This document shows positions 6,501-62,900 of a stretch of 64,000 nucleotides of DNA, piece after piece. Made by a program: the position numbers and the translations under genes. Origin of the DNA: Klebsormidium nitens (Eukaryota; Plantae; Klebsormidiophyceae); contig DF237115.1 in NCBI GenBank assembly GCA_000708835.1, positions 62,001 to 126,000 of the forward strand, given 5' to 3'. Each line of letters begins with the position of its first letter. The stretch's first letter is position 1. The notes below the pieces were generated by a model. That model was not told the DNA's origin. It searched no databases and was given only the letters and a program-made list of their open reading frames with translations.

Positions 6501-8996
6501 GAATCTAAGGAGGACCTAGACTCCCGGCCAAACTTCGCGAGCCCCTTGGGCTAAAACCACGGGGGATCGACGGTCCGATGAAAAAAACAGACAATTTGGA
6601 ACCGTCGATTCGAAGGGTTATATTTCAGAGGGTCCCTTAAAAGCTGGCCCGGAATCCGGATCCTCCTTCCATCCGACTTTTGCAAGTACGTTCTTCTTCC
6701 ATCCGTTCTGGTCAGCTCTGTCTTTCTCAACCCTCTAAGGCTCCCCCTCGACAGTTCTTGCGGTCAGACGTGCTGCTCGGCCCATGCAAAAACGATGAGT
6801 CTCTGTGCGCTGCCGCTTTTTGTGGGTACCCATGGAGACCGGTTCCCACGTCGACGCTTGCGGTTCCTTCTGGAGGTCATACGTCACGGAGCGCTGGGCG
6901 CTTTTTCATGGTCGGTTTGCGGGCTCGTTAGAAGTTGATGATATGTCCAACGGCCAAAACTAAGCAGAGCGCAAGCGCGTAACATGATTACAGCCCGGGT
7001 ATTGGTCGAAGAGCCAGACTCAAGTCTGGTTACAAGGAACTACTATTACCCAATCCCTATGTGTGCGCGAAGCACTCATTTAGCTGACACGTGGCGCCCC
7101 GTGCAGGCATCGTCCCCGTGCAGAAGGTCCTGGCCTTCGACTCCTTCGCGGACGACCCGCCCTCGTCAGGATCAAAATTCCACTGTGCACGTGGCACTCA
7201 ATCTGACTGACACGTGGCGCCCCGTGCAGGCATCGTCCCCGTGAAGAAGGTCCTGGCCTTCGACTCACTCACCGACGACCCGCCCTCATCAGAATTTAAT
7301 CTTCTTGTACACGTGGCACTCAATTTGACTGAGACGTGGCGCCCCGTGCAGGCATCGTCCCCGTGAAGAAGGTCCTGGCGTTCGACTCCTTCACCGACGA
7401 CCCGCCGTCGTCCGGCCAGCCCCAACTCCCGGTTAAGATCGAGGCGACCGGAATCGTCGGTAACCCGTTCGACGCCGCTAACCCCGCCCAGCTCATCCTC
7501 ATCAACGACAACGATTTCGGCATCGCCGGGGACTTGACCCGGTTTACTCTTTTCAACGTCGCCGCGTCGACTTACCAGACGGTTTCCGACGCTCCCGCGC
7601 CCGCCCCGGCTTCGACGAATGCTACCGCTACCCCGACCCCCACACCGACTGCGACCCCGCTTAACTGCATCTCGAGCTTCGCCGCGGGGAGCACTTGCGA
7701 CCCCTTTGGGGCCACCCCTAACCAGGTGAGTGTGACGCTGACGCGTTCGCTCTGACGAAAGGGGACGTCAGAACAAGAAACGCGACGTAAGTGTGACTCG
7801 GAGACTTGAACACCTGTGCAGTGATCGGGCCGATTTGTTCTGCGTGTCTGTCTTTTCCGTCGACGTCGTTCCTCTCGAGCGAACGCTTTCGAGTTTTCGT
7901 CTTTTCTTCGGTCGTCGTCTCTCCGAAGCGAACCTTCTGCACGGTCACTAAACGATCGGTCCTGCCACTGTCGAGAGGCACCAACCTGCTAGTGCTTCAC
8001 CCTCTCTGTTTTTTTCCGTACATCGCACAGGTCTGCCACGCACAAGTTTGCACTAGCAGTCAATCGGTCTCCTAGACATCGACCTGACCGTCACCCTCGA
8101 CTCATCCCCTATCGCTGCCGCCTTCACAACGCTGCTTTAACATTGGTTTCTACACTATTCCCTTCTCTCTCTTTTCTTTTCAAAGCCGGCTCTTCCTACT
8201 CTAATCCCTCATCCGATCGTCCTCCTCTAATCCTTCCTCTCATCTCTCCTTCCGCCAGTGCTTCAACAACGCCGGTTCCTCCTACACCTGCTGCGCCGGC
8301 AGCTGCGGTTCCCCCCCCGGCGCCGTGGCCTACTGCACGGGGCAAGTCCCCGGGACCACCCCCGTCTGCGGCTCCACCCCTGCTCCGACCCCTGCCGGTA
8401 CCCCCGCCGGTACACCCGCCGGTACCCCTGCTGGTACCCCTGCCGGTACCCCTGCTGGTACCCCTGCTGGTACCCCTGCCGGTACACCCGCCGGTACCCC
8501 TGCTGGTACGCCTGCCGGTACCCCTGCCGCGACCACCGGCGCCCCGGGCCCGACCGCTTTTCCGGTTGGCGGCACGTGCGACGCCGGCAGCAGCCTGCCT
8601 AACCAGGTGGGCGATCGTTTGCTCGGGTGTGCGTTGGTTGATAAAGAACGGTTCCGCAGTCTGTTCTTTCGTTCCGTTTGCCTCTGCTTAGCGAGCGAAG
8701 TGCGCCTCCTTGCCTCTCAAGCTCGCTGGTTGAGTTTGAGTGGGTTGTTCTGCCCCGATCATAGAGTTACCGGTACTGATGAAACGACTCCTTCGATGTT
8801 TAGCTGGTGAGCACCAGAAGTCGTGTTCCCTTAGGTTGAGTGCAGCCGTCTCCTCCTTTTTGCCGCTGGAGGCCCTTCCATTTAAACCGAGTCTGTGCTT
8901 TACTTTCCGCAGTGCTTCAACGCCGACGGATCCAAGTACCTTTGCTGCCCTGCCGCGTGCGGAAGCCCCCCTGCCGCCCTGCCTTTCTGCGCTTAG
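514..8996 (+). CDS. Secreted phytase-like esterase (PF13449-type), paralog A, with C-terminal Pro/Thr linkers and two Cys-rich modules; first (signal-peptide) exon not found, probably upstream of the window
   Basis: Phase-consistent GT-AG exons: 514-592, 1233-1354, 2189-2401, 2867-3045, 3535-3640, 4183-4270, 5050-5219, 6208-6331, 7352-7725, 8259-8606, 8913-8996 (TAG). Family motifs LWTITDRGAN, DTESIV, FWVSEEYGPSI, RELNRGFENLA, ILQSPM and INDNDFG. Colinear exon by exon with paralog B. Confidence 0.85.
4785..5049 (+). repeat. Intronic ~27-28 bp minisatellite built from the branch-point/acceptor segment
   Basis: About ten degenerate units of (c)cggattccgctcgcacactgactt; the last unit ends in cgcag, the acceptor of exon 5050. 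Confidence 0.85.
5860..6207 (+). repeat. Two truncated copies (acceptor plus ~70 nt) of exon 6208, upstream of the intact exon
   Basis: cag|ATCGACCTCACTGGCGCAACC at 5875 and cag|ATTGACGTTACTGGCGCCACC at 6022 versus the intact cag|ATTGACCTCACTGGCGCGACC at 6208; both copies run into stop codons. Confidence 0.9.
7080..7351 (+). repeat. Two truncated copies of the start of exon 7352 (period 122-123 bp)
   Basis: gtggcgccccgtgcag|GCATCGTCCCCGTG occurs with exon-start positions 7107, 7230 and 7352. Confidence 0.9.
8388..8531 (+). repeat. Coding 12-bp minisatellite, (TPAG)11-TPAA linker
   Basis: acc cc(t/c) gc(c/t) ggt units read directly from the sequence. Confidence 0.95.
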
Positions 8997-18100: not shown

Positions 18101-20029
18101 ATAAACGTGGGAGAAGACTTGAAAGAAGGAAAGGAACAAACAACTTTGCGATCGGTAGTCCGACCCTGTTACAAACCACCCAGGGTCTTCGAGACTCTCT
18201 TTGTCAAGGACACTCTGCGTGAAGAGGGAAAAGATAGATTTGGGGCCAGTCAACAAGGGTACACACTTACCGGTTGATTCTTCCCCAGGCATCACCCCCG
18301 TGAAGAAGACCCTGGCCTTCGACTCCCTCACCGACCTCCCCGCGGGGGGGCCCCAGCTCCCGTCCAAGGTCGAGTCGCTTGCCATTTACGGGGATCCCTC
18401 CAGCACCGCCAACCCAGCGCGAATCATCCTCGACAATGATAACGATTTCGGCATCTCTGGTGCGACGACTTTCTTCACCGAAATCGCGGTCGATCCGACA
18501 GCGGTCTTTGGATTGGCTGCCACGCCACCTGCTCCCGCCCCGGCTAACTCGACCGCGACACCGACCCCGACTTCGACTTCGCTGAACTGCATCCAGAGCT
18601 TCCCGGCGGGGGGGACCTGTGACTACACCTCTGCTACCCCCAATCAGGTGACTTTTGTCCCCCTTTACAGTAACGGCATTCCAGAACGTGTCCTGGACTG
18701 CCGGAGACTTCCTGAGAGTCCTTCCTGCCTGCGTTGTGATTGCACGAAGCAGTTGATTCATAAACAGTGACCCGTGGCAACTCGATGCTTCGAGTGGCCG
18801 CATCCCTCCCTCCCAAATCGACCGCTGCGCTGCTTCCGCCATCCTGCCCAAATGCGCTCGCCTCATGATTTAGAACAGCACACGAGATCGCAACAAGACT
18901 ACCGATCTGATTCTGCGCGACTAAGCCTCATGGATTGCTTGCTCGTTGTTGTTCGGGTCTTCAAAAGTATTTTAGAATTGGTCACCGTTGCTGCGAAGTC
19001 ATTGAAAAGGCCTTCGACTCTTTCTCTGTCGCTTTTCTCCCCCTTCCCAGTGCTTCAACGGCAACGGTTCCTCCTACACCTGCTGCGCCGGCGCCTGCGG
19101 TGGGGCCGGCTCCCCCCCGGGCGCCGTGGCCTACTGCTCGGGGCAAGTCCCCGGGACTACCCCCGTCTGCGGCTCCACCCCCGCCCCGACCCCTGCCGGT
19201 ACCCCTGCCGGTACCCCCGCCGCTACCCCCGCCGGTACCCCTGCAGGTTCCCCCGCCGGTACCCCTGCCGGTACCCCCGCCAGTACCCCTGCCGCGATCA
19301 CCGGTGCCCCGGGCCCGACTGCCTTCCCGGTTGGCGGCACGTGCAACGCCGGCAGCAGCCTGCCGAACCAAGGTACGTGTAACGTGACTGAGGCTCGAAT
19401 CTGCCACGTGGCAGCTGGTTCAAATCGCTGAAGCTGGTCAACACCCCGGGCTCGAGCGGTCGTCTTTTTCCTTTTGATGCTCAAAAATGCTCTCGACCCA
19501 CGTGCCGCATCACGAGCCCCTGGAAAATGAGTCGATCGGGCTCTTGGTAGCAGCCTGCCTAACCAGGTGGGTTATCCGAGTCGTTGGTTGAGCACCCTTG
19601 TTGACCAATGGGTCAACAAAGAGAACGATTGGGCGATCTGTTCTTCAATTCCGTTCCGCCTGCTCTGCGGGAAGGAAGGAGTGCGCCTCCTTACCCCTTA
19701 CAGCTGCTAGTTGAAGTTGTCATTAATGACTGGTTGTGCCCCGAAGAATTGCCACTGGTGATGAGACGACCTTTTGGATGTTTAGCTCGTGAACAGCACC
19801 GGACGTCGTTTCCCCTCCAAACGTGCACTCGTCTCCTCCTATTCTAGAAGCTAGTTGTATCGTTGAAAATCTTCTAATATGATCCTTTTATTCCAAGCCT
19901 CTTAAACAAGTCTTTTAGTCTGAGTTTACCCTTTCTTTTCCTCAGTGCTTCAACGCTGACGGATCCAAGTACACTTGCTGCCCTGGCGCGTGCGGCACTC
20001 CCCCTGCTGCCCTGCCTTTCTGCGCTTAG
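12178..20029 (+). CDS. Secreted phytase-like esterase (PF13449-type), paralog B, with signal peptide and Cys-module tail; last splice junction ambiguous
   Basis: Signal peptide MAVSRALVSVLLLASCALA. Exons 12178-12388, 12917-13104, 13742-13951, 14456-14634, 15142-15247, 16071-16158, 16676-16848, 17298-17422, 18289-18647, 19051-(19340 or 19372), 19946-20029. Same motifs as paralog A (TDRGAN, SEEYGPS, NRGFENLA, DNDNDFG). The last intron and 3' UTR are also homologous to paralog A. Confidence 0.85.
13550..13593 (+). repeat. Short echo of the acceptor and start of exon 13742
   Basis: ccttag|gtcttcaccggacccc at 13577 versus ctccag|gtcttcaccggaacccc at 13742. Confidence 0.65.
14737..14810 (+). repeat. 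Donor-side echo of the end of exon 14456-14634
   Basis: gaaactttcgttgcccgcgctaagtcgattctggcggtcgatcccaccaacgg|gtaagt repeats the exon end and its donor 155 bp downstream. Confidence 0.9.
17135..17297 (+). repeat. Frameshifted echo of the start of exon 17298
   Basis: tttag|attgagctggctggtgaccaac... at 17147 carries a 2-bp deletion relative to the real exon; the following spacer is homologous to the spacer in paralog A. Confidence 0.9.
19189..19296 (+). repeat. Coding 12-bp repeat, nine TPAG-type units
   Basis: TPAG TPAG TPAA TPAG TPAG SPAG TPAG TPAS TPAA. Confidence 0.95.
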
Positions 20030-44497: not shown

Positions 44498-46010
44498 GAG
44501 ATTAAGCTTTACTTGTGTACCGTTGATTTCGGAGAGTGTATTTTGGAGGTTGGTGATTTGGTACTCGAGCTTTTGCTTTTGGTACTGGAGAGTGATGTGA
44601 GTGGGACTGGGGCTGCGGACTGCTTAGAGCGTTGTGTGGTTTGTTGGCCGAAGAGGTCATATCGTTTCTATAGGCCTACGTAGGATTGATACTGCATATA
44701 CTGTAAACTCGTTCACGCTTGAGCCGACCACTGAACGTGTATATTTACGTGTTTTGACTGTGAGACTCTAATAATCCGGGAACGCATCGTTTTCTCCAAA
44801 GTTGGCTCACAGTCAATCGTAGCTCACAGGAGTAGCTCATGCAGTGTGCCATGTTTGGCGGTGCCATGACTTTCGAGTTTCCCCATCAATGATGCAGCGC
44901 AAGTGCTCAAATGTTATCAGAATACACTAAAAGCGTAACGTGATCTTCTACGAGCTACTGAGTCGATGCGCAGACGACCATGCCGAATGATTCTCTGCGC
45001 AATCATTAAGTACATGCAGCGCGCGTCCAGCCTGAGAATTATACGGTCACTAACATGCCAACAATTATGTACTAACTTACTAAGCTATATCATGTGTGGT
45101 CATGGCTTGATCGCCTGTGATTCTAGCTAGCGCTCTGGCAACGTCGCCCGCGTGCTCCAGGCGCTCCCATGCATGATATCTCACTCATGGCCGCACTGTC
45201 AGCGTGGGACCTACATGCCTAGCTATAGCTTAACTGGCACAGCGTCCCTTATGGCGCACTTTAATCATTGGTGTCCACTGTGCACGTATGCGAACCAGCT
45301 GGACCTAGATTTACGAGTCAATCATCCATGAACAGATGCATCTCCCAGTAACCATATAACTCGAGTGAGTAACTACACTCATGCACAAAGTTCGGGGCAG
45401 GGTGAAACTCATGCACCAGTACTCATATGTATTCTGTGCAATGATGGACAGTCAACGGAAAGCTGTGAAAGAATGTGCTTAATCGTACATAGTTACAAGC
45501 TTGAAGTGCAATAGGTGTGCAACAGCGAACACTATAAGCGGGAGTTAGCAGTGTCTCATTATGGCATCGAGCACAAACGTCGAACAAATGTGGTAATGCA
45601 TGCCGCCATGGCTGCTGGAATCGGACTCAATAGGCTTGGTAGTGACAACACGAGGATAATCTGAAGAAAGAGCTCAAATCCGAAAGTGTCAAAAGCAATA
45701 AACTTGTCGTCTGCTTTGGCACTAATCACAAAGTCCTAATCTTAGGCCCGCGAGCCCTGACCAAGATACAACATCGTGATGCACCAAATCAAATGTCTGA
45801 TTTTCAACTCAACGGTGCTTGCTCAACGAGGTAAATTACACTCTGATGGAGAAAGACATCGGGCGGACGTCTTTTTGGGCGCTTTCAAGTTAACGTCTTA
45901 GCTAATGATTGGGTCGCCTACAATTCGTCACTGCCAGTGCTCACCAAAACAGGCCGTGTCTAACAAGATTAGCGTCGCGCTTGCGTAAAAAAGACTGGGT
46001 GAATGGAACC

Positions 46011-46225
46011 GTCACGGGTTGATTTGTTTTGTTGGTCAATAAGTTATGGCAGTGTACAAGGCAAAAGACTCCTATGCACAGAACGGTGTCGGCCCCGGGT
46101 TGTTGGGGCATTGCTCGGTCACGGGTTGATTTGTTGTGTTGTTAAATAACGTATGCCAGTGTACGGGGCAAAGAGATTATTAAGCGCAAAACGGTGTCGG
46201 CCCCGGGTTGTTGGGGCACTGCCCG
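46011..46225 (-). repeat. 107-bp tandem duplication of the terminal exon end, stop codon and 3' UTR
   Basis: Units 46011-46117 and 46118-46225; the echo encodes ...PNNPGPTPFCA*. Confidence 0.85.
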
Positions 46226-49200
46226 GGGCAACAAATGGACGCAGTGCCGGGGGCGTTGAAGCACTGCACAGGAGAAAGCCGTCGAAAAGCGTCACAACAG
46301 TTCTTTAAATGGATGACAACGCCTACGGATCCTCTCGGTGACCCACAAGAAGAAGACGTGCAAGATTCTGAAACACCTGAAAGAATCTTGTACGACTGGT
46401 CTCGAGCTCGCAGCAAAAGTAGCAGATTCTTTCATTCTGAAGCCTCAGACGGAGCAACGGCGACTGTCAAACAACGGATCGGTGATCAAAGTATTGGTAA
46501 GGACTCCCCGCATACCTGAGTGACTTTCCTTCTGTATCCTCAATCGTTTTCAACCCCAAAGAACTACCATTTCCAAGCAAAACCCTTGTGCAATGCAAGA
46601 GGAACAAGATTGCAATGGTGGCCAGACCGAAGTGCAGGGCGAACTTGCAGCGAGGCCTATAAACTCAGAATCCAGCTCACAACAACGAACACAAAAGTAT
46701 TCCGTTTGTTACAAAGAACATCGGTCTTGGGCATTCTTACCTGGTTTGGCAGGTTCGAGGTCGGGTTGCACGGAGGGCTTCCCCCGGTCGTAGAACCAGA
46801 GGCACTGGTGGGAGAGGGATTGCCCGGAGATCCGGTGGCCGGGGAAGGTCCACCGCAGACGGCGCTGGCTCCGGGGTTTCCGGGGCATTGCCCCGGGCAG
46901 CAGATGGACTGTGAACCGGCCGCGTTGAAGCACTGCGGAAACGCAGAAAGTGGGCAGTCAAGGATCCTACGCTTTTGGGGAGTGAGAATGAACTTGTATC
47001 AGCGTACATGGATGACGGAAGTTATACTTGGAACGAGTTTCTTGGGCATTGTCCCGCGCAGCAAATGGACTGGGAACCAGCCGCGTTGAAGCACTGCGGA
47101 AAACGGAGACAACAAGTGGTCAAGAATCGTTTTCTGCTCGAATATGTGACGGAATCTCTACAAGACGTATCAGCGTACATGGATGACGGAAACTGGGCAA
47201 TCGGATTGAATCTCGAGGGCACTGTCCGGGCAGCAGATGGACTGTGAACCAAACGCGTTAAAGCACTGCAAAAGGTTTACAGCGAGTGGGCGAAGTTGAG
47301 TATCTGTAAAGTTCTATTGCCTATAAGGCCATGCCCGGAGGACGGGTGAGGTCGGCTTGGTGGTTAGGCGGGTTCGGGTGCGGAGTGGTTTATAATGTTG
47401 ATTGGAGGTTTTTGTTACGTTGTTGTTTTGGTACTGCCTTCAAGTTTTAGATCGTCATAAGGTTCGAACTTTACGGTTATGAGGAAGCGAGTTGTCGAAA
47501 TTTGAGCACATAGTGTACACATGCGATGTCCTTCACTGTAAAAGAGAAAAAGCAATCGTGCAACGGCCATCAAAGCTGTGCTTAGGAAGGAATAAGACGG
47601 CAATCAAATGTGCAATCAGAACATGGCAAAGCGTTAAAAGACTTTCGGCAAGGAGAAGACTAAGCCCTCTTATGTTGATCAGTCAAGCGGTGGACTCCCG
47701 ACGTTGCACCTGGTTCGGCAGGTTGGACATTGGATCGCACGGAGGGCTTCCCCCGGTCGTAGAACCAGAGGCACTGGTGGGAGAGGGATTGCCCGGAGAT
47801 CCGGTGGCCGGGGAAGGACCACCGCAGACAGCGGTGGCTCCGGGGTTTCCGGGGCATTGCCCCGGGCAGCAAATGGACTGAGAACCGGCCGCGTTGAAGC
47901 ACTGCAGAGAACGGAGACAACGAGTGGTCAAGAATCGTTCCTGGCTGGGAAATGTGACCGAACCTGTGCAAGACGTATCAGCGTACATGGATGACGGAAA
48001 ATGGGCAGTCGAAATTTCCGTGGGCATTGTCCCGGGCAGCAGATGGACTGAGAACCGGTCGCGTTGAAGCACTGCGAAAGTGTGAGAGCGAATAGGCGAA
48101 ATATAGTACCTATAAGGTCCTGATATGGATAAGGCCATCCCCGGAGGACGGGTGAGGCTGGCTCGGTACGGTTAGGTGAGTTCGGGTGCGGAGAGGTTCA
48201 TTATGTTGCCTAGATTTTTGTTAGGCTGTTGCACCGGATACTTCCTTCAAGCTTTAGATCCTCATAAGTGTCAAACGTCCCGGTTATGAGGAAGCGAGGT
48301 GTCGACAGTTGACCCCATAGTATACACATGCGATGTCTCTTCGCTGTAAGAGAAGCAAACTTGCCGCGGCCATCGAAGCTCTGCTTAAAAAGGAACACGA
48401 GGGCAAATCTGCAATTGAACTCTGGCTAGTCGGAGAACAACTTTCGGCAAGGTGAAATGAAGCCCTTTTTTTATGTTGATCAGTCAAGCGGTGAGCTCCC
48501 ATTCTTTTACCTGGTTCGGCAGGTTGGAGGTCGGGTCGCACGGGGGGCTTCCCCCGGTGGTGGAACCAGAGGCACTGGTGGGAGAGGGATTGCCCGGGGA
48601 TCCGGTGGCCGGGGAAAGCCCACCGCAAACAGCGGTGGCTCCGGGGTTTCCGGGGCACTGTCCCGGGCAGCAAATGGACTGTGAACCGGCCGCATTGAAG
48701 CACTGCGGAAACAGAGAACGTGGGGTCAAGAACTGTTCATTTTTGGCAAGCGCCCTATGCAAGCGTGTCAGCAAACATGGATGACGGGCACTCAAAATGA
48801 GTTGCGAATGTGGTAAATGCTTATGCGCAAATCAGCTACGTTTCACTGGGGGAACTTGGAAGTAAGCATCGGGATAGTGAGATGAAACAACAGAGACACT
48901 TTGGGCCATTCTCAGGGTGCGGTGGAGCCCTTTTTCGGACCACGGCTGAAAGCAAAGGATACTGCGCGTTTCTATACGTTTACTTGACCAAAAAGTCGAG
49001 CCGCTCCTCGTTTGCATTGGCGAGCTTACTGCACTTCGAATCAAAGACGTGCGCACACCGTTTCAAATGGACCTAGCAGCAACAGATTCGGTCAATACAT
49101 GGCGCTCCGTGCTGCGGACGCTGAGCCCACGGATCCTTACCTTTACAAGGCGGCAAGCGAAGCATTCGCCTGCCTGATCCGACTCGCTGCTCGTCGAATG

Positions 49201-49620
49201 CCGAGCCACACGTCTCACTTTTGAAGGGTTTTGCCGTTTGTGTGCGAGCAGGAACGTTATTTCGAAAATGCGTTACGGAAGGTGCTCACTTGGTTGGGCG
49301 CGGCTGACGTCAGGTCGCACTGCGCGCACGTTGGCACAGGTGGCAAAGAATCTGGACGCCTGATCCGACGCACTGCACTAGAATCCGTCGACTGCCAACT
49401 TCCATCTTTGAATGTTTGTGCCTTTCTGTGCAAGCAGCGGCGTCTTTCATAAAAGATACATGAAGAAGGTGCTTACCTGGTTAGGCGTGGCTGACGTCGG
49501 GTCGCACTGCGCGAACGTCGGGGCAGGCGCGAGTGTGGGGCCGCACACCGGGTTGGGCCCGGGGTTCTGAGGGCACTGCCCGGGGCAGCACAGGGACGCT
49601 GTCCCGGGCGCGTTGAAGCA
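46180..49620 (-). CDS. Array of phase-0 Cys-module exons with no evident start of its own; probable long 3' isoform of the NAGPA-like gene
   Basis: Exons 49620-49477 (48 aa), 48702-48511, 47901-47710 and 46932-46741 (64 aa each, near-identical), and terminal 46263-46180 (CFNAPGTASICCPGQCPNNPGPTPFCA*). All begin cag|TGC TT and the internal ones end AAC CAG|gt. Confidence 0.75.
46741..48702 (-). repeat. Recent tandem triplication of a module exon with its flanking intron (spacing 801 and 969 bp)
   Basis: Three 192-nt exons are nearly identical, and intron segments ~47280-47700 and ~48080-48500 align (e.g. aaggccat-cccggaggacgggtgagg). Truncated half-module echoes start at 48071, 47265 and 47093. 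Confidence 0.9.
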
Positions 49621-50490
49621 CTGCAAAGCTCGGGAAAGGCGTCGGGCTGCTGATCACCGGCATGAAGAATTGACATTCCAAAGATATTCCAAAATGATGT
49701 CGCTGAAACGTTATCCGTGTTCTTGAAAGGATGAGCAGCAAGTGCTGGATTTGGGACTCGCAGCCCTGTTCTTGTTCCTGAGTCTACTTTCCTGGACCAG
49801 GTGAGCAGACCTAAGGCACCTTAGTGAGCTTGCGTCGTTTGAAGGTTTTTGCGATCGGACAAAGTTGGACGCCTTAGCCGGTTTGACTTGAGCAGAATTT
49901 CAGCAATCGAGCTGTCCCACGATTGAACAACCTGGTCATCGGAAGGCCCAGATTCCAAGCAGATGCATAGGAAGACTCGAAGAAATGCAGGCAATCTACG
50001 GGTGAAGCAGGCCCGGTTGCATGCAGTTTGGTGACGGTGACTATCAAACGAGGATCGTACATGGGTCTATGGCGTGCTGTGACAGTCTCTTCTTCGCTCC
50101 GTACGGTTCATGCATAACTTAGACACGGTTCTTGCATAACTTAGACAACGGGAGGCTGCTTAATGTGGGCGGTCCGAAGCTGCTCTAATCTACCGTTTAC
50201 ACGAGAGGTTAGCTTATCTCAAAACAAGAGCTACCGAATTGCGCGGTCATCAACCGTTCTATTCACACTCAAACTACTGCCTTTGCCGGTCCTTTCTTGG
50301 ATCCAAACGGACCTGAAACTCCAAGCCACGGTTAACTTTTCGTGCTGCCCAGTCCTGTACAGTCCTGCTCGCACCCCCATACACACTATACATCTTTAAA
50401 AAGGCTGTAAATCGATCCAAACGGACTTCGTGGGGGTCCTAAGCCGGCTAACTATCAAAATCGTGACCTCGAGCAACAGCAGCCAGGGGA

Positions 50491-53400
50491 TCAGCACTGG
50501 GGGTTGGCCCCCGGGGTCTGGGGGCACAGCCCAGGGCAGCACAGAGACGCAGTACCCGCAGCGTTAAAGCACTGCACGACGACAGGACACTGTCACTCGT
50601 CTTTTGATCTGCTTGCTTTTCCTTGACGGACTGCGTTTTTGAACGATATGCCTCATTGACACAACTTCCGTACCTCGTCTAAAACACAGTCCTCAAGACG
50701 GTTGACACAACTTCCGTCCGTATTTCAAATACAGTCCTCCAAACGGTTGGGCTGTCAGTGCGGTAAACGCGACTGAATTCGCAACCAGATAGAGATACTC
50801 TCAGTATAATCGACGGCCTGGAAACCTTACGCACCTGGTTGGGATTGCCAGAAGTGGGGTCGCAAGGCGGGGGCGTTCCTGCGGCGACTCCGGGCGCTGA
50901 CGTCTTCGCAGGAGCGGTCGCCGTAGTTCCCGAAGGCACCGGACCAGCGGTGGTCGGGGCGACGGTCGGGGCGGCGACCACTGGGCCGGTCGGGGCCCCG
51001 GTGGTAGAGCCGGGAGTGGTAACGGTAGTGGGGCTGGAAGCGGAGACGGTATTGGGGCTTGGAGTGGTCGGGGGGACAGCCGGGCCGCACACGGCGAGGG
51101 GCCCGGGCCTCAAGGGGCAGGCCCCGGGGCAGCAGATGGACAGTGTGCCAGCGGCATTGAAGCACTGCGGGACAAAGGAAGGGTTTGCGAAACGGGTTAG
51201 GGAGACTCGGCGAGCCTGTTGAGAGCGTTGGGTGATAGACTGGAAAAGGAAGCGAGGGCATATAAAAGCGTGAGTCAAGGAGAGAAGAAAGCGGGCGGAG
51301 GAATGGTATGGTATGAAAGTGGTAAGAGACGAGGAAAGACGGCATCAAGGAAGGGGGTACGAGAACCGATAAAAACAACCAGAAGAGCCACAAATTTTCT
51401 CTCTGCGTCGGCCATGTGAGTTGAGCGTTGGAGATGAACTGTAGGCAGAGGCTTACGGTTCCCAAAGAAGAACACAAGGCATACAAGCGCGCTGACGTCT
51501 TGCTATAAGAAAGGGCTGATATTTGCCGCGAGGGGTGTGGAGCTAGGGCCAGAAAGACACGACCAACTCGAAGGTTGAGGTGGAGCATGCACACGATACA
51601 GAAAGCGTCTCGGCATTTTTCCGCCCAATAATCTTGAGCGCCTCCGTCGAAACGTTCGGTGGGTCACTGACTGCCTTTTCATAATCTGCAACTTTAAGTA
51701 GAATCCCAAATCAAAGGAGCTGACCCCAAATCTCGACCAACAACAAACCTCTGATCACGCAATAAGGGGATGCACTTAGCTAGCTCCAAGAAAAGGTCGG
51801 CAGCCTCTTCGTTACAAGTTTTGGCGCGAGTTATCGAGCGCGGTTGAGGAAGTCAACCGACCTGGTTAGGATTCTGCGAGGTCGGGTCGCAGGGCTGCGA
51901 AGGGGCGATCTTGAAGCGGTCCTTGAAGCAGACGATCGACGTGACGGCGCGCTCCTGGCGGAAGCTGAACGTCTGGCCGTTCACAGTCGCGTTAAGACTG
52001 CAAACCGCAAAGACCAGGATTTATGCTTTTGGATATTTAGGACTGAGGTTTCTAGAAACCACAGTGGGAGAAAGCCATCGCCTTTCAAAGCTACTCAGTT
52101 TGTGAAGACCTGATGGCCTGCTTCTTGCGGAGCAAGGATTGCGTTGAGTCTGAAACGCCTGGCCGTTGACGGCGTGGTGAGACTGCAAAAGCGCAGTGGC
52201 GAAACCTTAGGCTTGCAGAATTGAGGATTGGGCACTTTAAAATAGGCTGTTGAGATTCTACTCCAGCGAAGGCACCTCTAGTGGAAGCCCTGATGGCGGA
52301 AGCCCTAATGGCCTGCTTCGGAAGGAAAGCGAACGCTTGGCCATTCAAGGTTGCGTTGAGATTGCGACCCACAGGGTCCAGACCTACAGACTTCCAGTAG
52401 GAGTTTAAATTGAAAGCTTTCTGGTTCTCAGACCTTGAAGGTCCCTCCTTGACGAAGACCTGATGGCGTGCTTCTGTCAAAAATGAAAACGCCGAGCCCA
52501 AGGAAGTTTTTCGGGGTTTGTACAGCAACTCCAAACTCAGGTGTAACATTCCCGGGGCGGCAAATAAAAGATTGCGCCTGCAAATAGTAAGTGTCCTGAC
52601 TCCCAGCTTCTACAAAGTTTTGGGGCTCAGATTACGAAAGCGATATCACAATCGTTTCCTTTGCAAGGACGACTCAACCGTTAACGTGCTGTTACAAAGG
52701 CGAAGCTTGGGCAGCTAACGGAATCAAGGGCTCTAAAGCTTACTTTGAACTCTTCTCAACGTCCTGAGAGAAAGCAAGTTTGAGCGGCTAGGCCAACAAG
52801 CACGTTTGGAGCGAAGGAAGGAAAAGCACTTCAATTTGAAAGGCAAGCGCAAGTGGTTCTCACATGTCTGACGGGTAGCTCGACAAAATTCCGTCGGTGA
52901 CAAAGGCGCTGCTACCGCCCCCGTCCAGGTTGATTGCGTTCACGGCGCCATACGAGATGAGCAGGTCCGCGACGTCGTATAGGCTCGCGCCGCGCACGTT
53001 TGACTGGCCGTCCAGCTGGAGCAGGAGGATCTCGCCCGCGGCGTTGTGCCCGATAGCCGTGCGGGCTGACACAATGCTGGCAAAGTCCTGGGAAAAGGAG
53101 GATGGTGTCAAAGCTGGCCCACCGGAGTGAGCACAGTGGGTAGTCGTTGGAGTTGAGCTCCGGTGCCAATCTGTGGCGGTTAAAAAGGACGAAGATAGAA
53201 ACACAATGCTGGCAAAGACCTGGGAAAAGGAGGATGGTGTCAAACCTGGCCAACCGGAAGGGTGAACACTGAGGGTGAACATTGGAGCCGAGTGAGAGCT
53301 CTGAGCTGAGCTCCGCTACGATACCTGTGGCCGTAAAAAAGGACGAAGACAAGAACACCATGCTGGCAAAGACCTAGGAAAGAGGACCGTGTCAAAGCTG

Positions 53401-56400
53401 GCTCGTTGGTAATGGGGAGACTGGCGTATGCATGTCAGCTGAGCGAGCTATGTACAGTGCTTCAGTACAATTGTTGAGCCATCCGGTGGGTAAACACAAC
53501 CGATCGGAGGACTGAGGACGACTTCAGACCCTTCAAAGCCGTGCCCGGAGGTCAAGCTCCACGGCAGAGCTGCACGGACGAGCAAATTGGTCTGGCCGCA
53601 AATACAAAGTAAAGGGGCAAGCCGGGAAAGTGGCTCTGCGGATGCTAGATATGTCGCCAGGCTGGTATCCTTGAGCTGACGCGCATTGGGCAACCTTGAT
53701 TTCTGAGAGGGTGGTCCTTTGGAGCTTGGCCAGGCTGTATGGTTATGCTGACGCCATTAGGAAACGCTTGAGGGCCAAGCGGGTGATCCTTCGGAGCTGA
53801 GTGAATGGCAAGACTTCGTGAAGGTGGAGGCTGTAATGGGTTAAGATAAGCAAAGAGCATCGAGCGTCGAATAGGAAGGGGGAATACAACCTTGTAGCAG
53901 CAGCTTCATGTTTCTCTTATTCCTATTACCGCAAAGGGGCTTGAATCTTGAGAATCTTCGCGTGCTCACCCACAAGAATTCTCGTTTCATTGCAAACAAG
54001 AACTTCATTTCATTGTTTCCAAACTTGCATAGGAAAGGCTCGAGCGCGTCCCCACCTGGATCGTTCCGGTAGTCTGGGTACTGGGGTCCTCATAAGGCAG
54101 ATCCTGCTGAACGTTGTTCTGCCCGCCCTTCACGAGCCACACCACTCCGCTCGTCAGCTGGTCGAACGGCACCTTCCCGGCTGCTCTGCCTTGCGCTTCC
54201 AGAGCCGACACGTAGCCTGCAGCGAAAAGCAGACTATTTAAAGAAGTCTGACACCTTGCGCTTCTGGAGCCGACACGTATCCAGCACTGATTAGCTGACT
54301 GTAAATGTGAGTATGACACCTTGCGCTTCTGAAACCACAACGTAACCCGCAATGAAAAGCAGACTCTTCAAAGAGCGTCTGATATCTTGCGCATTTGGAG
54401 CCGACCCGTAAGCAGCATGTGGCAACCTTTCAACGACTCCGGAAGACTGAAACGGTTTATCCAAGGCGTAAACCGGGCCCTCTCCAAGCCGACAGGTAAA
54501 GCATAAGTACAAAAGCTGTCAAAAAAATTCGAAAGCCTGAAGTCAATGGAGGTTGTGAACAAAAAACAGATCTGGACAATCTTGCGCGAAGCTTTCAACA
54601 AAATCGATCTGAGTGTCCTGAGGACAGACATGCAAATCTCATGCGGCTTCAGAAAAGACATGAGTTGATGAAGGGTCACAGAAACTGATGACTAGGTCCA
54701 AGACGTTCCAATGAAGTACAAGGGATTAAAAGGAGCAGGAGGGCTTTGTCAAGGATTTCCCTGACTTGGACCCGCAACGAGAAGGGCTGAAGACAATTGT
54801 GCTCGAGACTTCCTGATTAAGCTCTTGAACAGAACAAGTCAGTTTGTCCAGAACTACTCAAAGATATGCGCAGGACTAAAGAAGCTACACATATGCTGTT
54901 CACAGGATCGGAGGTCATGAGACGTCGTGAGCAGGTTCATGTTATGGACTTGCCCAAACACTGCCCTTAAGTTTGACTTGCTTCTATCCATCCTTCAATG
55001 CACAAAAGTTTCGACTCTTGAGTTCCGACCCCTGGGATCAGGGCAACAAACCGACTTAAAAGATGTGGCGTGCACATAGGCAGCCAAAAGCTGGACAGGT
55101 TCAAAACGGCACCTACATGGACTCAATTCCCTGTTATTATCAAAGGGCCAGAACCTGAAGAGGACTGAAACGTCTTTCGTCTCCTCAATTGGAAACCTTG
55201 AAGAGGTTGTTGGTGGACTTTGACAGTGGAACTCCAGATGAATGGACTCGATTTCAATAATCAAATGGAGACGCCTTTCTTTTACACTAATTTGACATGC
55301 CAAGCAAGCGGAGCGATGGAACACGGAAACGAGGACGAGACGTGAAAAGAAGTAGACGGGCGAATGTACCCTAGGAAAGGGAAAGATTCGGTTCTTACCT
55401 ATCACGAAGTTGCCATTCCGGAGACCGAAGTTGACGTTCTGGGTACCTGGAGCCTGGATGACGACTCCGTTGCTCACCTACAAGTCAGATAAAAGAGCTT
55501 TTTTGAACCTATTGACCACTTTTGGGACACGTTGGAAGAGGAATGCCAGATAGTTACGAAGCACAAGCCTGGTTCATTAGACTTCTTTGCATGCATGCAC
55601 GAACAAGTTGGAAGGGGGCTGAAGCGGGTTGTTTTAACACCTACTTTGACTACCAGGACGGTAGACCCAAGGACCAGGGCAACTTGGAGACCTATCGAAA
55701 GCAATAGAGCGACAGGGAGCACAAAAGGGGCAAAGAGGGACGAGAGAGAAACGGACCCTGTAAAGAAGCGTGCAAGTAGACCTGGGTCTGTCAAACGATG
55801 ACTGTCCGCCTGATAGACTCAAGATTGGCGCGCTCGCACTCTCGTTATAAAGTCAGTTCTTTTATCGGGTTGATCAGGATACCCCTGTGAACCCATCCTC
55901 TCACCAGGTTACCCAGGCAGCCCCCAGTGGTCACGTTGAACAGGGCGCCGTTTGCTGCCACGTGGCAGTTTCCGGCAGCTGCAGTCGTGGAAGTGAGGCT
56001 CCGTCCGCCGGTGGTCACACCATTGCTGGTGCTCACACAACCTGCACCATATAAAAAATGGGTTACGTAACAGAGATAGTAAATTGCACGGTCAAAACAG
56101 TCTCAAAGAAATCAATTATCCTCTGGGCCTGCTTGAAAGCTCTTTTCCCATCTACGTAGGGAGGACGTCCCCTTCAAGAGGCTTTCCAGCGACTGAAAGG
56201 TGGCTGGAAGTCGCTACTACATTGCAAGCATGGCCTTTTCGAGTGAGCAGCAAGAGCGGAGCCTCCCTAAGCTCTTGCCTGGGGGATCTCTCACGTGACG
56301 CCAGCTATAAGAGGCTCTGTTATTTAAAAGATACAAATCGCACTCATCTTCCATGAATGAAGTCTGAAACAGAATCACAATCTCGCAACTGCGCTACAGA

Positions 56401-57995
56401 CAGATTCTTCGAGTTCCGACAATCCGTTTTGTGTCAGGAGGCGTAAAGGCACAACAGAGATGAATCACGAGTGCACAAATATAGGATACCTGACATGCCG
56501 CATCCCACGTGCCCTGACTCTGGAAAGCTTCTATTGGAATCTGTCCCACCACCTTTTAATAGATGCTGAAATATGAATGACAAAACTCTGAATGCTCCCA
56601 TTCCAATGCTTCAATTCCACCTGATAGCCTGCTTTGCCTGCTAACCAGCAGCTCAACAAGCCTTTGAACAGGCGCATATGACCAAGTCTTCCCATCTCAT
56701 TCGCTGAATCCCTGGAAACGAGAACAACGAGAGCATCAAACATGGACTCACCGGCAGCAGGGGGGAGGACAACAAACTGGCCTATGGGGTTGTGCAGGAT
56801 GCTCAAGTGTCCCGTTTGAACTGTCCCGTTTGGGCCATTGTTCTCAATCAGGTAAGTCGTGATGTTGGCTGCGCCGTCGTTGTTTGTGCTATTGAATGCG
56901 GGGTACTCGACCTAGAAGGCCAGTCAGTAAAGCTTCAGTCTTGCTGAACAAGTCTCTGAGCGATGCATATTTGGACTTACAAAAGCTTTCTGAAGTGTCA
57001 ATGAGTGATGAAATGTGATAGGAACTTTCCAATTGAAGACGGCAAATGATAGTATGTCGAAAGGCCAGATATGGTTGGGGCAATGCACCACAAGAGAAGC
57101 AATTTGAGAGAGAGAAAGTCATGGTTAGAAAAGAAAGTTCTCTGTTTGACGTTAAGTACTGTTGTTCCAAGTCGGGGGACTCGATGTAAAGAATGGTCGT
57201 CATTTAACCAAGAACATCCTCCATGTCAGCTGGACTCAACCTGCTGGAAACATGAGAAGGATTCATATAGAAGAATAGAATGGCTCGTCTCAGCCAGATC
57301 TCGAGCCTTGCTTCTTGTGATATGTCTTCGTAAAACTTGAGAATCGGGGCCTCTATTTTCACATAACTATCAAGTCCCGCTACAACTCGCCAAAAACTGT
57401 CACCACTTTATGGTGCTCTAAATTAACTATCCTGAGTGGATTCAAGACTTCAGCTTGGTTGAATGAGGTATGAAAAGCATTATGCAAATGTTTCATGTCA
57501 GTGGTTTCTACACTCAGGCATTAAGAGTTAGATACTGGCCACTGTCCAATCCTCAGATGTTATTTCATGCCTGAGCGGACGCCCAGGGAATGGAAGAAGG
57601 ATGTACTCTGATGCATCAAGCCTATCGAAGTTTCATATGACAAGCTATGATGGACACTCTGTGCAGAAGCTTGTCCCCAGATCTTGGTGTGACGAAGAAT
57701 GCTGTCCATTTGGTGGTGCCATCAGTGCACACTCCTAGATAAGGTCAAACCGCTCGAGAATCATCGAATTTTGCAGGCAGGACACAATCTCATCGATATG
57801 TCACAACATTGTAGTGTTGCACTACAAAGGAAAAACTTTTCTCCCAGAATCAGACTTTCAAGCTGGACGAAACCGATTGGATGCATCTCTCACCTGTGGG
57901 AGGTTAGTGGTGATGTTCTGCCCGAATGCTGCATGCACCGCCAGGCTCACGACAGCGAGCAGCAGTGCATTCCTTGACATAGCAGAGGGCGCCAT
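50491..57995 (-). CDS. Secreted NAGPA-like phosphodiester glycosidase (PF09992/DUF2233-type) with two Cys-rich modules
   Basis: Signal peptide MAPSAMSRNALLLAVVSLAVHAAFG. Exons 57995-57894, [one or two small exons between ~57734 and ~57535 unresolved], 56910-56752, 56041-55905, 55477-55399, 54216-54056, 53087-52864, 51997-51862, 51164-50835, 50571-50491 (TGA). Motifs AANGALF, CLGNLVS, QLTSGVVWLV, SARTAIG, LLQLDG, NAINLDGGGS and RAVTSIVC match NAGPA as recalled. Confidence 0.82.
52130..52370 (-). repeat. Two echoes of the start of NAGPA-like exon 51997
   Basis: ttttgcag|TCTCACCACGCCGTCAACGGCCAGGCGTTT (~52183) and cgcaa|TCTCAACGCAACCTTGAATGGCCAAGCG (~52364, acceptor mutated) versus the real tgcag|TCTTAACGCGACTGTGAACGGCCAGACG. 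Confidence 0.75.
53190..53390 (-). repeat. Two echoes of the start of NAGPA-like exon 53087
   Basis: cccag|GTCTTTGCCAGCATTGTG (53219) and cctag|GTCTTTGCCAGCATGGTG (53373) versus the real cccag|GACTTTGCCAGCATTGTG. Confidence 0.88.
54250..54420 (-). repeat. Three echoes of the start of NAGPA-like exon 54216 (period ~63-65 bp)
   Basis: Copies of TACGTGTCGGCTC.GAAGCGCAAGG with degraded acceptors. Confidence 0.8.
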
Positions 57996-59906: not shown

Positions 59907-62900
59907 TCAGCCGAGGGGTTCTCTCCGCAAGCGCTTCATTTCGGCGGATAACATGCCCATGGAGACCCGCGCAGGGCTCAGCGAGGGCCCCCCGCCCTCC
60001 ACACGCAGCGTCCCGTTCAAGTAGGCCAACTCGCGCAGTTGAGCTTTCTTGACTTGGTCGTTGCTCTCGTCCTGCACAAACGCAGAGGTTGTTTGAGGAT
60101 GATTGCTTGACCTCCGGAATGATAAGTAGACACTATCGGTTTGTCAAAAGCATCGAAACCAGGGCAGGCCTGATCGATCTTCGGTGAACGTCGCAGTAAT
60201 AGCCAACATGAAATTTCCAGTTGAGAGAGGACACAGTACGATGCAGACATTACTGACGGCTCGACAAGTTCGTAAACGAGCTTCAGTCCGCACTCAAGAA
60301 GGAACAACTATTCAGCCCTCAAATGCTGGAACATTTACCACTGGCTTTGTTGAGTACGTGAAAGCAGAGATTCGCACGTGGCGCGACATGCTGACTGACT
60401 CCGAACCGAAACCCCAAGCAGTTATACTGAGATATGCCGCGAGGTATCCGCCGTCCCAGATTGACCCCCTTGATGGGTTCGCAGGCAATCTTCCTTCAAG
60501 GATCAACGCAACATACTGAAACAAAAGCCTGAAACTCACGACTGGCTTGATGAGTTCGTGAATGATCTCTACGGCCTGGCTCAGTTGTGCGTCCACGATG
60601 CCTAGCGGCATCTCAGCCTCGATGTGCACATGCAGCGGCTCCTTCAGGTGCTCGAACCCCGGCTTGTCCCGCATCTTCTCCTCCTGCGAAACCGGTGAGA
60701 CCGCGGTAAGATTAGGGGCTCAGATTTTCCTCCAGGCCTGACAGTGTTTAAGCGCAATCTGCGGCCGACCACGACCAGGGAACTTTTACTGTGACGCCTT
60801 AACGACTGAGTCTGGAGTTACAGCGGCCTTGAGGTGCTCGAAACCGGGCTTGTCCCGCATCTTACCCTCCTGCAAGATCAGGAAGGCCGCCGTAACGCTA
60901 GGAGCTGAAATCCGCCAGACGCTACAGCGTTCTGGCCGACCAAGACGTAAAATTCAGGACAGAATAGGTCGAGACTTCGGTTGTGGCCTGAGCTAGTCCC
61001 GCATCTTCTCCTCCGAAAACAAGAACAACATCGTCGGAGGAAATCGGGAACAGCATCGTAACATTAGGTCCCTCAACCGTCACAGCATCATATCCACGCA
61101 GCGGACGACCAAGGTATCCGGACCAATGATTCGTAACGCTTTCACGTAGCCCCACTTTCGGCGTTACAGCGTTCATAGCTGTATTGTCGAGCGGCAAGAA
61201 AAGCCGAAGGCAAGAGGACTCAATAACATTACTTTCCCGGCTTGTCCCGCTAAGTCTTCCACACGATCATTACATTTGCTTTGCGCTAAGGTCTAACGTT
61301 CTCCAGAGAATACGGCGTCCACCAGAATCCCACCAGAGGAACTCTTCGGGGTTTCATGCCCACGCAAAACTTCCAAGACCCTTGGTCGAAACTGGGCTGT
61401 CCGTCTCCCGTCCGGCACGAAAAAGATAAGGCTTTCTGAGGCTCACTCTAGCTCGTCTTTCCGATGCTGCAGTTCCTGATTACCCGTCAGCGCAGATTTT
61501 CCCACGGTCAGGAACAAAGACGCTGGTACTGTGGCCTCCGTAATCGGAACAGCCTATTACCAAGAAATGTTTAACAAAAGGCACTGTAACTCCAGCTCGC
61601 ATCTGGGCGCTCCGTGACTAACGTCCCGAGCCAGCCCAGAAAGACCTCGCCCAACCGGTGAACCGTTGAATCCGGTGAAGCGGTGAACCGGTGAACCATT
61701 GAATCCGGAAAACCCCTTTTGCACGGTAAGTTTGCTCGGGCCGGAGATCAAAAAAGTGGTGTCCGCGGAATATTGGCTCTTACATAGCTCCGTAAGGTCC
61801 TGGATTCGGTCCCTCTTACCTTTACTTGGTCCTTTATTGAGCCGCGCCCTCGTATCAGCACCTTGCAGCCGGTCCCCGCTTCTATCCGTTTCAACGAGTT
61901 GCCCCGCGGCCCCAGTATTCGCCCCACGAAGTTGTACTGCGGGGAAAAAGCGACACGTGTCAGGTCCGTAAAACAAAATTTGAACCTTCCTGGACTGTCT
62001 CGCAACCCAACTATCAGATGTCGGCCGAACAAAATCTTTTCCCTTATGTTTCTTCCAAAAATGAAAACATCGTGATGGGCTACTTGCCAAGCGAGACTTT
62101 TGACCTCCCGCCACCGTCTCACGGATCAAGGTTTTTGTGGCAAGGTCCGGTGCCTTCCAATCAATGAAAATTAAAGACGTCTTCACCAGACCGTACCTTC
62201 CTTCCGATGCAAACTGCTGACCAACCCCTCTCTGCCCTCGAGGGCAGAAACTTGTTTTCGACAGATGTCAATCAAGCAAAGGGCCTTTCTCGACCGCTTC
62301 AAGACGCACATTTACCAAAGCAGACCCGTCTTTCAATTCTCAAAAGGCATAGGTCACCTCCGCAGCTTTTCACTCGACCGCCACGGTTTCAGCCTTTCTC
62401 AAGGCATAATCTCCACAAAACGTCGGTTACTTCTCAGTACGTCTCTCCTCACCCGAATACATGGCTGCCAGATTGCAAGCCTTTCTCGACTATTGCAGCT
62501 AAAAGGAGGGTTCACTCTTGAGGTAAGACCTCTTGGAGTAAGACCTCACGTTCGATTACCTAAGGGTTCGTGCCAAAGCAGACTTGTATCCCGGACTGAG
62601 AAGCGGATGAACCCGCTCCTGAAGCACAACCTTACATTCGGATATTTGTCGACCGGAACTTCGACCTTCCTCGACCGTTTCACGACGGGCCCTTGGGCGA
62701 GCGAACCCTGAGAGGCGCTCCAGCCCATTCCGCTTGCGCCGCTAGGAGACGGGGCGCTCTGGTGCGGATAACCCTGCATATTGTTTTTCAATTCAAAAAG
62801 ATGCCCCATATGCCTGACAGGAACGAATCAAAGCAACGGTTACATACTCTGCGATTCGGATCACTTTTAGAAAATGATCAAATTGTCTCAAAAATGCAAA

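Follow-up and report, generated by a model that had tools for sequence, protein, structure and literature searches.

A NAGPA-like gene of Klebsormidium nitens with a possible second tail of six cysteine-rich modules assembled from half-module exons

The locus considered here lies on contig DF237115.1 of Klebsormidium nitens, within a stretch of 64 kb (positions 62,001 to 126,000 of the contig) that is referred to below as the window and to which all coordinates refer. It contains a gene for a NAGPA-like enzyme with a tail of small six-cysteine modules, followed by an array of five further exons that encode the same type of module and could belong to the same gene. GenBank places two genes at the locus: one for a 469-aa NAGPA protein with two modules (P0017), and KFL_001660180 (GAQ83883.1; P0001), which encodes 294 aa and covers the array. 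Both models are present in GenBank, UniProt, and EukProt. The contig sequence agrees with window positions 60393-36180 at 100% identity. All tail and array exons are on the minus strand:

50491..57995, minus strand: NAGPA-like gene (P0017, 469 aa), from the ATG at 57995 to the TGA ending at 50491; signal peptide, PF09992 domain, and two six-Cys modules
51862..51997, minus strand: last exon of the catalytic part; ends in N-half 1, CDPTSQNPNQ before gt
50835..51164, minus strand: tail exon, 330 nt, 110 aa, phase 0/0; C-half 1, 73-aa Pro/Thr linker, N-half 2
50491..50571, minus strand: stop exon; 26-aa C-half, then TGA; annotated last coding exon of P0017
50313..50393, minus strand: annotated first exon of KFL_001660180, 27 aa (MYSVYGG...); ATG 50393, donor 50313
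49477..49620, minus strand: array exon 1, 144 nt, 48 aa, phase 0/0; orphan C-half, short linker, N-half
48511..48702, minus strand: array exon A, 192 nt, 64 aa, phase 0/0
47710..47901, minus strand: array exon B, 192 nt, 64 aa, phase 0/0
46741..46932, minus strand: array exon C, 192 nt, 64 aa, phase 0/0
46180..46263, minus strand: terminal exon; 27-aa C-half, then TAA; ends ...FCA like the plus-strand paralogues

The whole module spans 36 residues, C-x9-C-x9-CC-x3-C-x9-C, and is interrupted by a phase-0 intron between NQ and CF. Exons 51997-51862, 51164-50835, 49620-49477, 48702-48511, 47901-47710, and 46932-46741 have phase-0 ends that carry the first 11 residues of a module, and the remaining 26 come from the following exon. 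Checks of frame, acceptor, and donor show that the internal exons start after cag with CFNA..G....CC and end in C-x7-PNQ before gt; each thus comprises a 26-aa C-half, a linker of Pro, Thr, Ser, and Gly, and an 11-aa N-half ending in NQ. Every internal tail exon is phase 0/0 and a multiple of 3 nt long, and alternative joins are possible in frame. The initial annotation had described this layout, and its exon coordinates, AG acceptors, GT donors, phases, and stop codons were all confirmed by reading the minus strand and by a scripted check, as were the composition of the 330-, 144-, and three 192-nt internal exons and the presence of five more exons behind the stop exon. Missing from it were the three truncated decoys (48071, 47265, and 47093), the copied donor at 49319-49290, the repeat of the terminal exon's end with its 3' flank (46118-45998), and the annotation of the array as a separate gene.

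The N-terminus of P0017 resembles a signal peptide, and residues 112-311 match PF09992 in Pfam (E = 4.5e-27; 95.8 bits against a cutoff of 25); the open reading frame (ORF) of exon 6 alone scores 71.8 bits against this family. PF09992 was the only Pfam match to the protein, with no EGF-like family matched, and membrane helices are outside Pfam's scope. The introns of the gene measure ~260-1200 nt.

The array is under coding constraint. Among exons A, B, and C, third codon positions account for 17 of the 21 variable columns (P about 1e-5), and pairwise synonymous differences (pS 0.14-0.25) far exceed replacement differences (pN 0.007-0.02; pN/pS 0.03-0.08). Units A and B arose by tandem duplication of an exon together with its intron; the two introns are 81% identical over ~600 nt, and the full array units, of 801 and 969 nt, each include complete exons. 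An exon that is likewise 192 nt long and bordered by cag and gt occurs in a Logan contig of another species (L002, run SRR14092359); it differs from A, B, and C at pS 0.50 and pN 0.12, and the sequence beyond the exon cannot be aligned. The third-position bias and this conserved counterpart indicate that the full array exons evolved as translated sequence. Splice sites and frames are intact in all five array exons, and the array is translated today or was until recently.

The array has no independent start. No ATG-initiated signal-like exon or N-half is present in 49621-50834, none of the twelve ATG-started ORFs in 49621-50490 combines a signal-like core with an N-half, and a scan of the whole window for N-halves matched only known exon ends and the copy at 49319. 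Additionally, an in-frame stop lies 12 codons upstream of acceptor 49620, with no ATG between them. The ORF check and the N-half scan therefore bear out the earlier observation that no ATG or signal exon ending in NQ before gt precedes 49620. Donor 50835 is the closest one to supply, in phase 0, an N-half along with a signal peptide and an enzyme.

Translation of KFL_001660180 is annotated to start 97 nt past the NAGPA stop on the same strand. Its first exon (50393-50313) has a GC content of 0.52 and a third-position GC content (GC3) of 0.52, like the surrounding non-coding DNA (0.47-0.53), as compared to a GC3 of 0.66-0.89 in bona fide exons. It encodes no hydrophobic signal, while a signal peptide is found at the start of every complete module protein (P0006, P0010, P0011, and P0017). 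Beyond this exon, the KFL_001660180 model coincides exactly with the five array exons, and the protein is left with an orphan C-half at its start. The short gap, the lack of a signal peptide, the non-coding-like composition, and the orphan half module all raise the suspicion of an artificial start, and the annotated first exon is probably a gene-prediction artefact, introduced by the predictor to rescue the array.

These observations bear on the possibility that the locus holds two separate genes as annotated, with the NAGPA gene ending at 50491 and KFL_001660180 running from the ATG at 50393 into an orphan C-half. This would agree with the models P0017 and P0001 in all three databases, and a phase-0 GT donor is indeed present at 50313. 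However, two coding sequences would then follow one another on the same strand at a distance of just 97 nt, the second with a first exon of non-coding-like composition. Its product would be a disulfide-rich protein with Pro/Thr linkers that nevertheless lacks a signal peptide, and the incomplete first module would leave it with an odd number of cysteines (29). Two genes are thus an unlikely arrangement.

The introns of the array and the flank of the terminal exon contain partial copies of splice junctions and exon edges:

49278..49340, minus strand: intronic copy of the exon end and donor of exon 49620; N-half copy at 49319-49290 with CAA before gt, 86% identity
48018..48071, minus strand: truncated decoy, acceptor plus exon head; intact acceptor, first ~54 nt of the exon, then intron sequence
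47040..47265, minus strand: two truncated decoys starting at 47265 and 47093, acceptor plus exon head; the 47265 copy has a 1-nt deletion
45998..46118, minus strand: tandem copy of the end of the terminal exon and its 3' flank

Alignment shows that decoys 48071, 47265, and 47093 switch after ~54 exon nt to an intron segment that is normally found ~100 nt upstream of the parent acceptor. They are therefore ~170-nt tandem duplications of the 3' splice region (spacings of 170, 172, and 187 nt), and as head-to-tail repeats of an intron 3' end plus exon head beside the parent they belong to the splice-junction tandem copies. The donor copy at 49319-49290 is unusable in phase 0 from any acceptor seen. 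The truncated copies carry a frameshift and replacements, whereas the full array exons are intact. Partial copies also occur elsewhere in the window. The introns before NAGPA exons 7, 6, and 5 (52150-52400, 53100-53400, and 54230-54360, minus strand) each hold one to three decaying acceptor plus exon-head copies. At 7090-7350 on the plus strand, three tandem copies of this kind (GIVPV.KKVLAFDS...) lie ~120 nt apart, and the last one alone runs on as a full exon.

The nearest relative of the stop exon is the C-half of exon 49620, from which it differs at pS 0.51 and pN 0.10 (pN/pS 0.20; small numbers, over 26 codons). About five synonymous and three replacement changes, assigned by hand, fall on the stop-exon lineage, which hints at constraint without establishing it. 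The exon retains all cysteines and the FN..G motif, shows no frameshift, and ends exactly at Cys6, while other terminal exons end one residue later. Its substitution pattern suggests that the stop exon is also translated and is not a freely decaying copy. When the 3' flanks of the two stop-bearing exons were compared, no similarity was detected. A recently truncated internal exon was considered as the source of the stop exon and rejected, since no linker, N-half, or donor remnant follows the TGA.

The favoured reading starts from an array that is constrained and yet lacks a start, a signal peptide, or an N-half of its own, for which skipping of the stop exon is the best explanation. Judged from genomic sequence, the locus would then be one NAGPA-like gene with two alternative 3' tails, of two or six modules, and we give this reading a probability of roughly 45%. 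The gene would encode a signal peptide and a phosphodiester glycosidase domain, followed by a tail of six-Cys modules on Pro/Thr-rich linkers, with donor 50835 as the proposed branch point between the two tails. Joining this donor to acceptor 50571 would produce the annotated two-module protein that ends at the stop exon. Joining it to acceptor 49620 would instead skip the stop exon, add five exons, and yield a protein that has six modules by exon count. The intron removed in the latter case would be 1214 nt long, within the range of the gene's other introns. The array arose via tandem duplication of tail exons together with their introns, by the same local process that produced the intronic splice-junction copies. 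The core claim of the initial annotation, that the array needs NAGPA donor 50835, is thus favoured by the array constraint, by the missing start and N-half, and by the non-coding-like annotated start, with the 50835-to-49620 junction and the use of both tails as its predictions.

Several points weigh against this reading. Public gene models all place two genes at the locus. A six-module protein was not found among 5.8 billion sequences, in which a search with the P0017 tail returned only P0017, P0001, and P0008, and the protein databases hold no fragments of either model that derive from transcript assemblies; a word search that used the 51164 exon within its ORF of 199 aa likewise gave no match. 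The absence of a six-module form and of such fragments of either model from the databases is uninformative either way. Two modules are the usual tail in the paralogues, splicing of the array could be disturbed by the intact decoy acceptors in its introns, and the purifying selection on the array could predate a recent loss of use. Finally, the constraint on the stop exon is estimated from its 26 codons only.

Alternatively, the acceptor and head of exon 49620 may have been copied long ago, and gene prediction may have mistaken this unused copy, the stop exon, for a terminal exon; the gene would then encode six modules constitutively. Intronic acceptor plus exon-head copies are abundant at this locus, the C-half of 49620 is the closest relative of the stop exon, and its coding part ends right at Cys6, one residue earlier than in other terminal exons. 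However, a pN/pS of 0.20, a full set of cysteines, and an unbroken frame at a pS of ~0.5 are unlike a neutral copy of that age, and 951 nt separate the stop exon from the supposed parent, as compared to 100-190 nt for known junction copies. A constitutive six-module gene is accordingly improbable. More doubtful still is the view that the gene's 3' end was duplicated and left the array behind as an unused relic that enters no productive mRNA today: an orphan half module at the array start is what a duplication breaking inside an intron would leave, decoys and truncated exons are interspersed with full ones, and no database protein or transcript-derived fragment joins the array to NAGPA, but the differences among exons A, B, and C are strongly biased to third positions, all five exons keep intact splice sites and frames where the truncated copies carry a frameshift and replacements, and the exon type is conserved across species.

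The favoured reading of one gene with two tails can be extended to an RNA-level setting of module number, anywhere from two to six, through skipping of the stop exon or of any subset of array exons, with every module intact and built across a splice junction and with exon-plus-intron duplication supplying new valency states. The initial annotation had proposed such free cassette skipping, which would tune valency and generate chimeric modules. The phases are compatible with it, and nothing beyond phase compatibility speaks for it or for a functional meaning of such chimeras. Regulation of this kind is unlikely, and the combinatorial skipping of cassettes is speculative.

A profile of the window's exons had 15 matches at E <= 1e-3 among 1.84 billion representative proteins; all named ones are from K. 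nitens, and the rest are from JGI or Logan. For instance, P0006 has a 300-aa domain without a known family and two modules, P0008 has three modules, P0010 has a signal peptide and three modules, and P0011 has two N-terminal modules. The cysteine spacing is 9, 9, 0, 3-5, 9 in 25 of the 27 matched module copies, and five copies (P0005, P0007, P0010:33-72, P0013, and P0015) have a first gap of 7, 8, or 11. In an alignment of 24 modules the six cysteines are invariant, in the order C-C-CC-C-C within ~30-40 residues, and AlphaFold2 produced from this alignment a confident small model with one beta hairpin (predicted local distance difference test score, pLDDT, of 94). No Pfam family, with CBM1, hevein, EGF, and granulin included, was matched by the exons or the whole module proteins at E up to 1, save for one sub-threshold chance match. 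Similarly, a PDB profile search with the module returned nothing at E up to 10, and fold and feature searches (Foldseek against PDB, VIA-align wide, Atlas by shape, and Atlas by features) gave no match. The module is a candidate cell-wall or glycan anchor and may, behind the NAGPA-like domain, anchor a secreted enzyme to the wall or to glycans.

The earlier view that modules exist only after splicing applies to this tail and to the two plus-strand paralogues but not to the whole family. The intron does not always separate NQ from CF: in P0008 and P0010 the module is either interrupted before Cys5 or left undivided. In KFL_004060070 (DF237355.1) and KFL_000630265 (DF237012.1), the module intron is before Cys5 and the last module is whole in one exon. 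JGI contigs L086 and L087 (samples 3300060285 and 3300060284; 147 kb and 40 kb; eukaryote-like) have two modules in one uninterrupted ORF, which indicates that the module occurs outside the reference strain without an internal intron. Assembly through splicing alone is thus a trait of this tail subfamily.

The plus-strand paralogues at 7090-8990 and 18290-20026 have an N-half before gt, an exon with a C-half, a long (TPAG)n linker, and an N-half, and a terminal C-half exon ending in FCA-stop. A two-module tail with a short terminal C-half exon is therefore the design of both. The last exon of their upstream enzyme part had no Pfam match. In the second paralogue (19360-19570, plus strand), the N-half ends in AAC CAA followed by ggtacg, with no phase-0 GT, and AAC CAG before gtgggt is retained in an intronic copy ~195 nt downstream; this gene thus has either a relocated working donor or a broken tail.

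A metagenome scan with NAGPA exon 6 yielded 80 loci, the best of which are 36-52% identical across the whole protein. None carries the six-Cys module, and the scan detected no orthologous locus. One of these loci is a contig of a human-gut metagenome assembly, which matched as NAGPA-like and is not regarded as human DNA. The literature searched does not mention the locus tags and offers nothing of use on NAGPA or on splicing in K. nitens. Elsewhere in the window, the coding starts of two divergent annotated genes are just 57 nt apart (18689-18746 of L001, approximately window positions 41705-41648), which is possibly another doubtful model boundary.

What is new here, and solid, is a probable mis-split gene model together with an undescribed, lineage-specific cysteine module. 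If there is a long isoform, then one gene is divided in two in the K. nitens reference, KFL_001660180 has no standing as a separate gene, and the locus is a clean natural case of exon duplication extending a modular protein through an intron within the module. No major surprise for splicing or plant biology arises until transcripts are seen. Precedents exist for alternative terminal exons, for tandem exon duplication, and for half-domain exons; their combination at this locus is neat but unproven.

As with known alternative last exons, a stop-bearing exon is followed by further in-frame exons with compatible phases, and skipping it would extend the protein. In the present case, known from genomic sequence, the extension would add the same module four more times and not a new domain such as a membrane anchor. 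Exons that encode half domains are found in FGFR2, where IIIb and IIIc are alternative second halves of immunoglobulin (Ig) domain III, and in Dscam1, where the exon 4 and 6 clusters encode halves of Ig2 and Ig3; these are mutually exclusive choices that alter binding specificity. Shared with K. nitens are exon borders inside a domain and a splice choice that builds a composite domain. In contrast, the N-halves here are nearly identical, a chimeric module would hardly differ from any other, and it is copy number that would vary.

Fungal CBM1 and hevein/CBM18 are small Cys-rich binding modules on Pro/Thr linkers at enzyme C-termini, and knottin-type peptides have the C-C-CC-C-C order. The K. 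nitens module appears analogous to these in its ~36 residues, its six cysteines in the same order, and its repetition on Pro/Thr/Ser linkers behind secreted enzymes, although it has no Pfam, PDB-sequence, or fold match and a single Phe as its sole conserved aromatic. Animal NAGPA, the uncovering enzyme, is a membrane protein with EGF-like repeats. PF09992 behind a signal peptide and a Cys-rich C-terminal region are common to both proteins, but the tail of the K. nitens protein is a lineage-specific module. The splice-junction copies at 48071, 47265, 47093, and 49319 consist of acceptor or donor regions plus an exon edge, at 160-190 nt from the parent, whereas the full array units contain complete exons under coding constraint.

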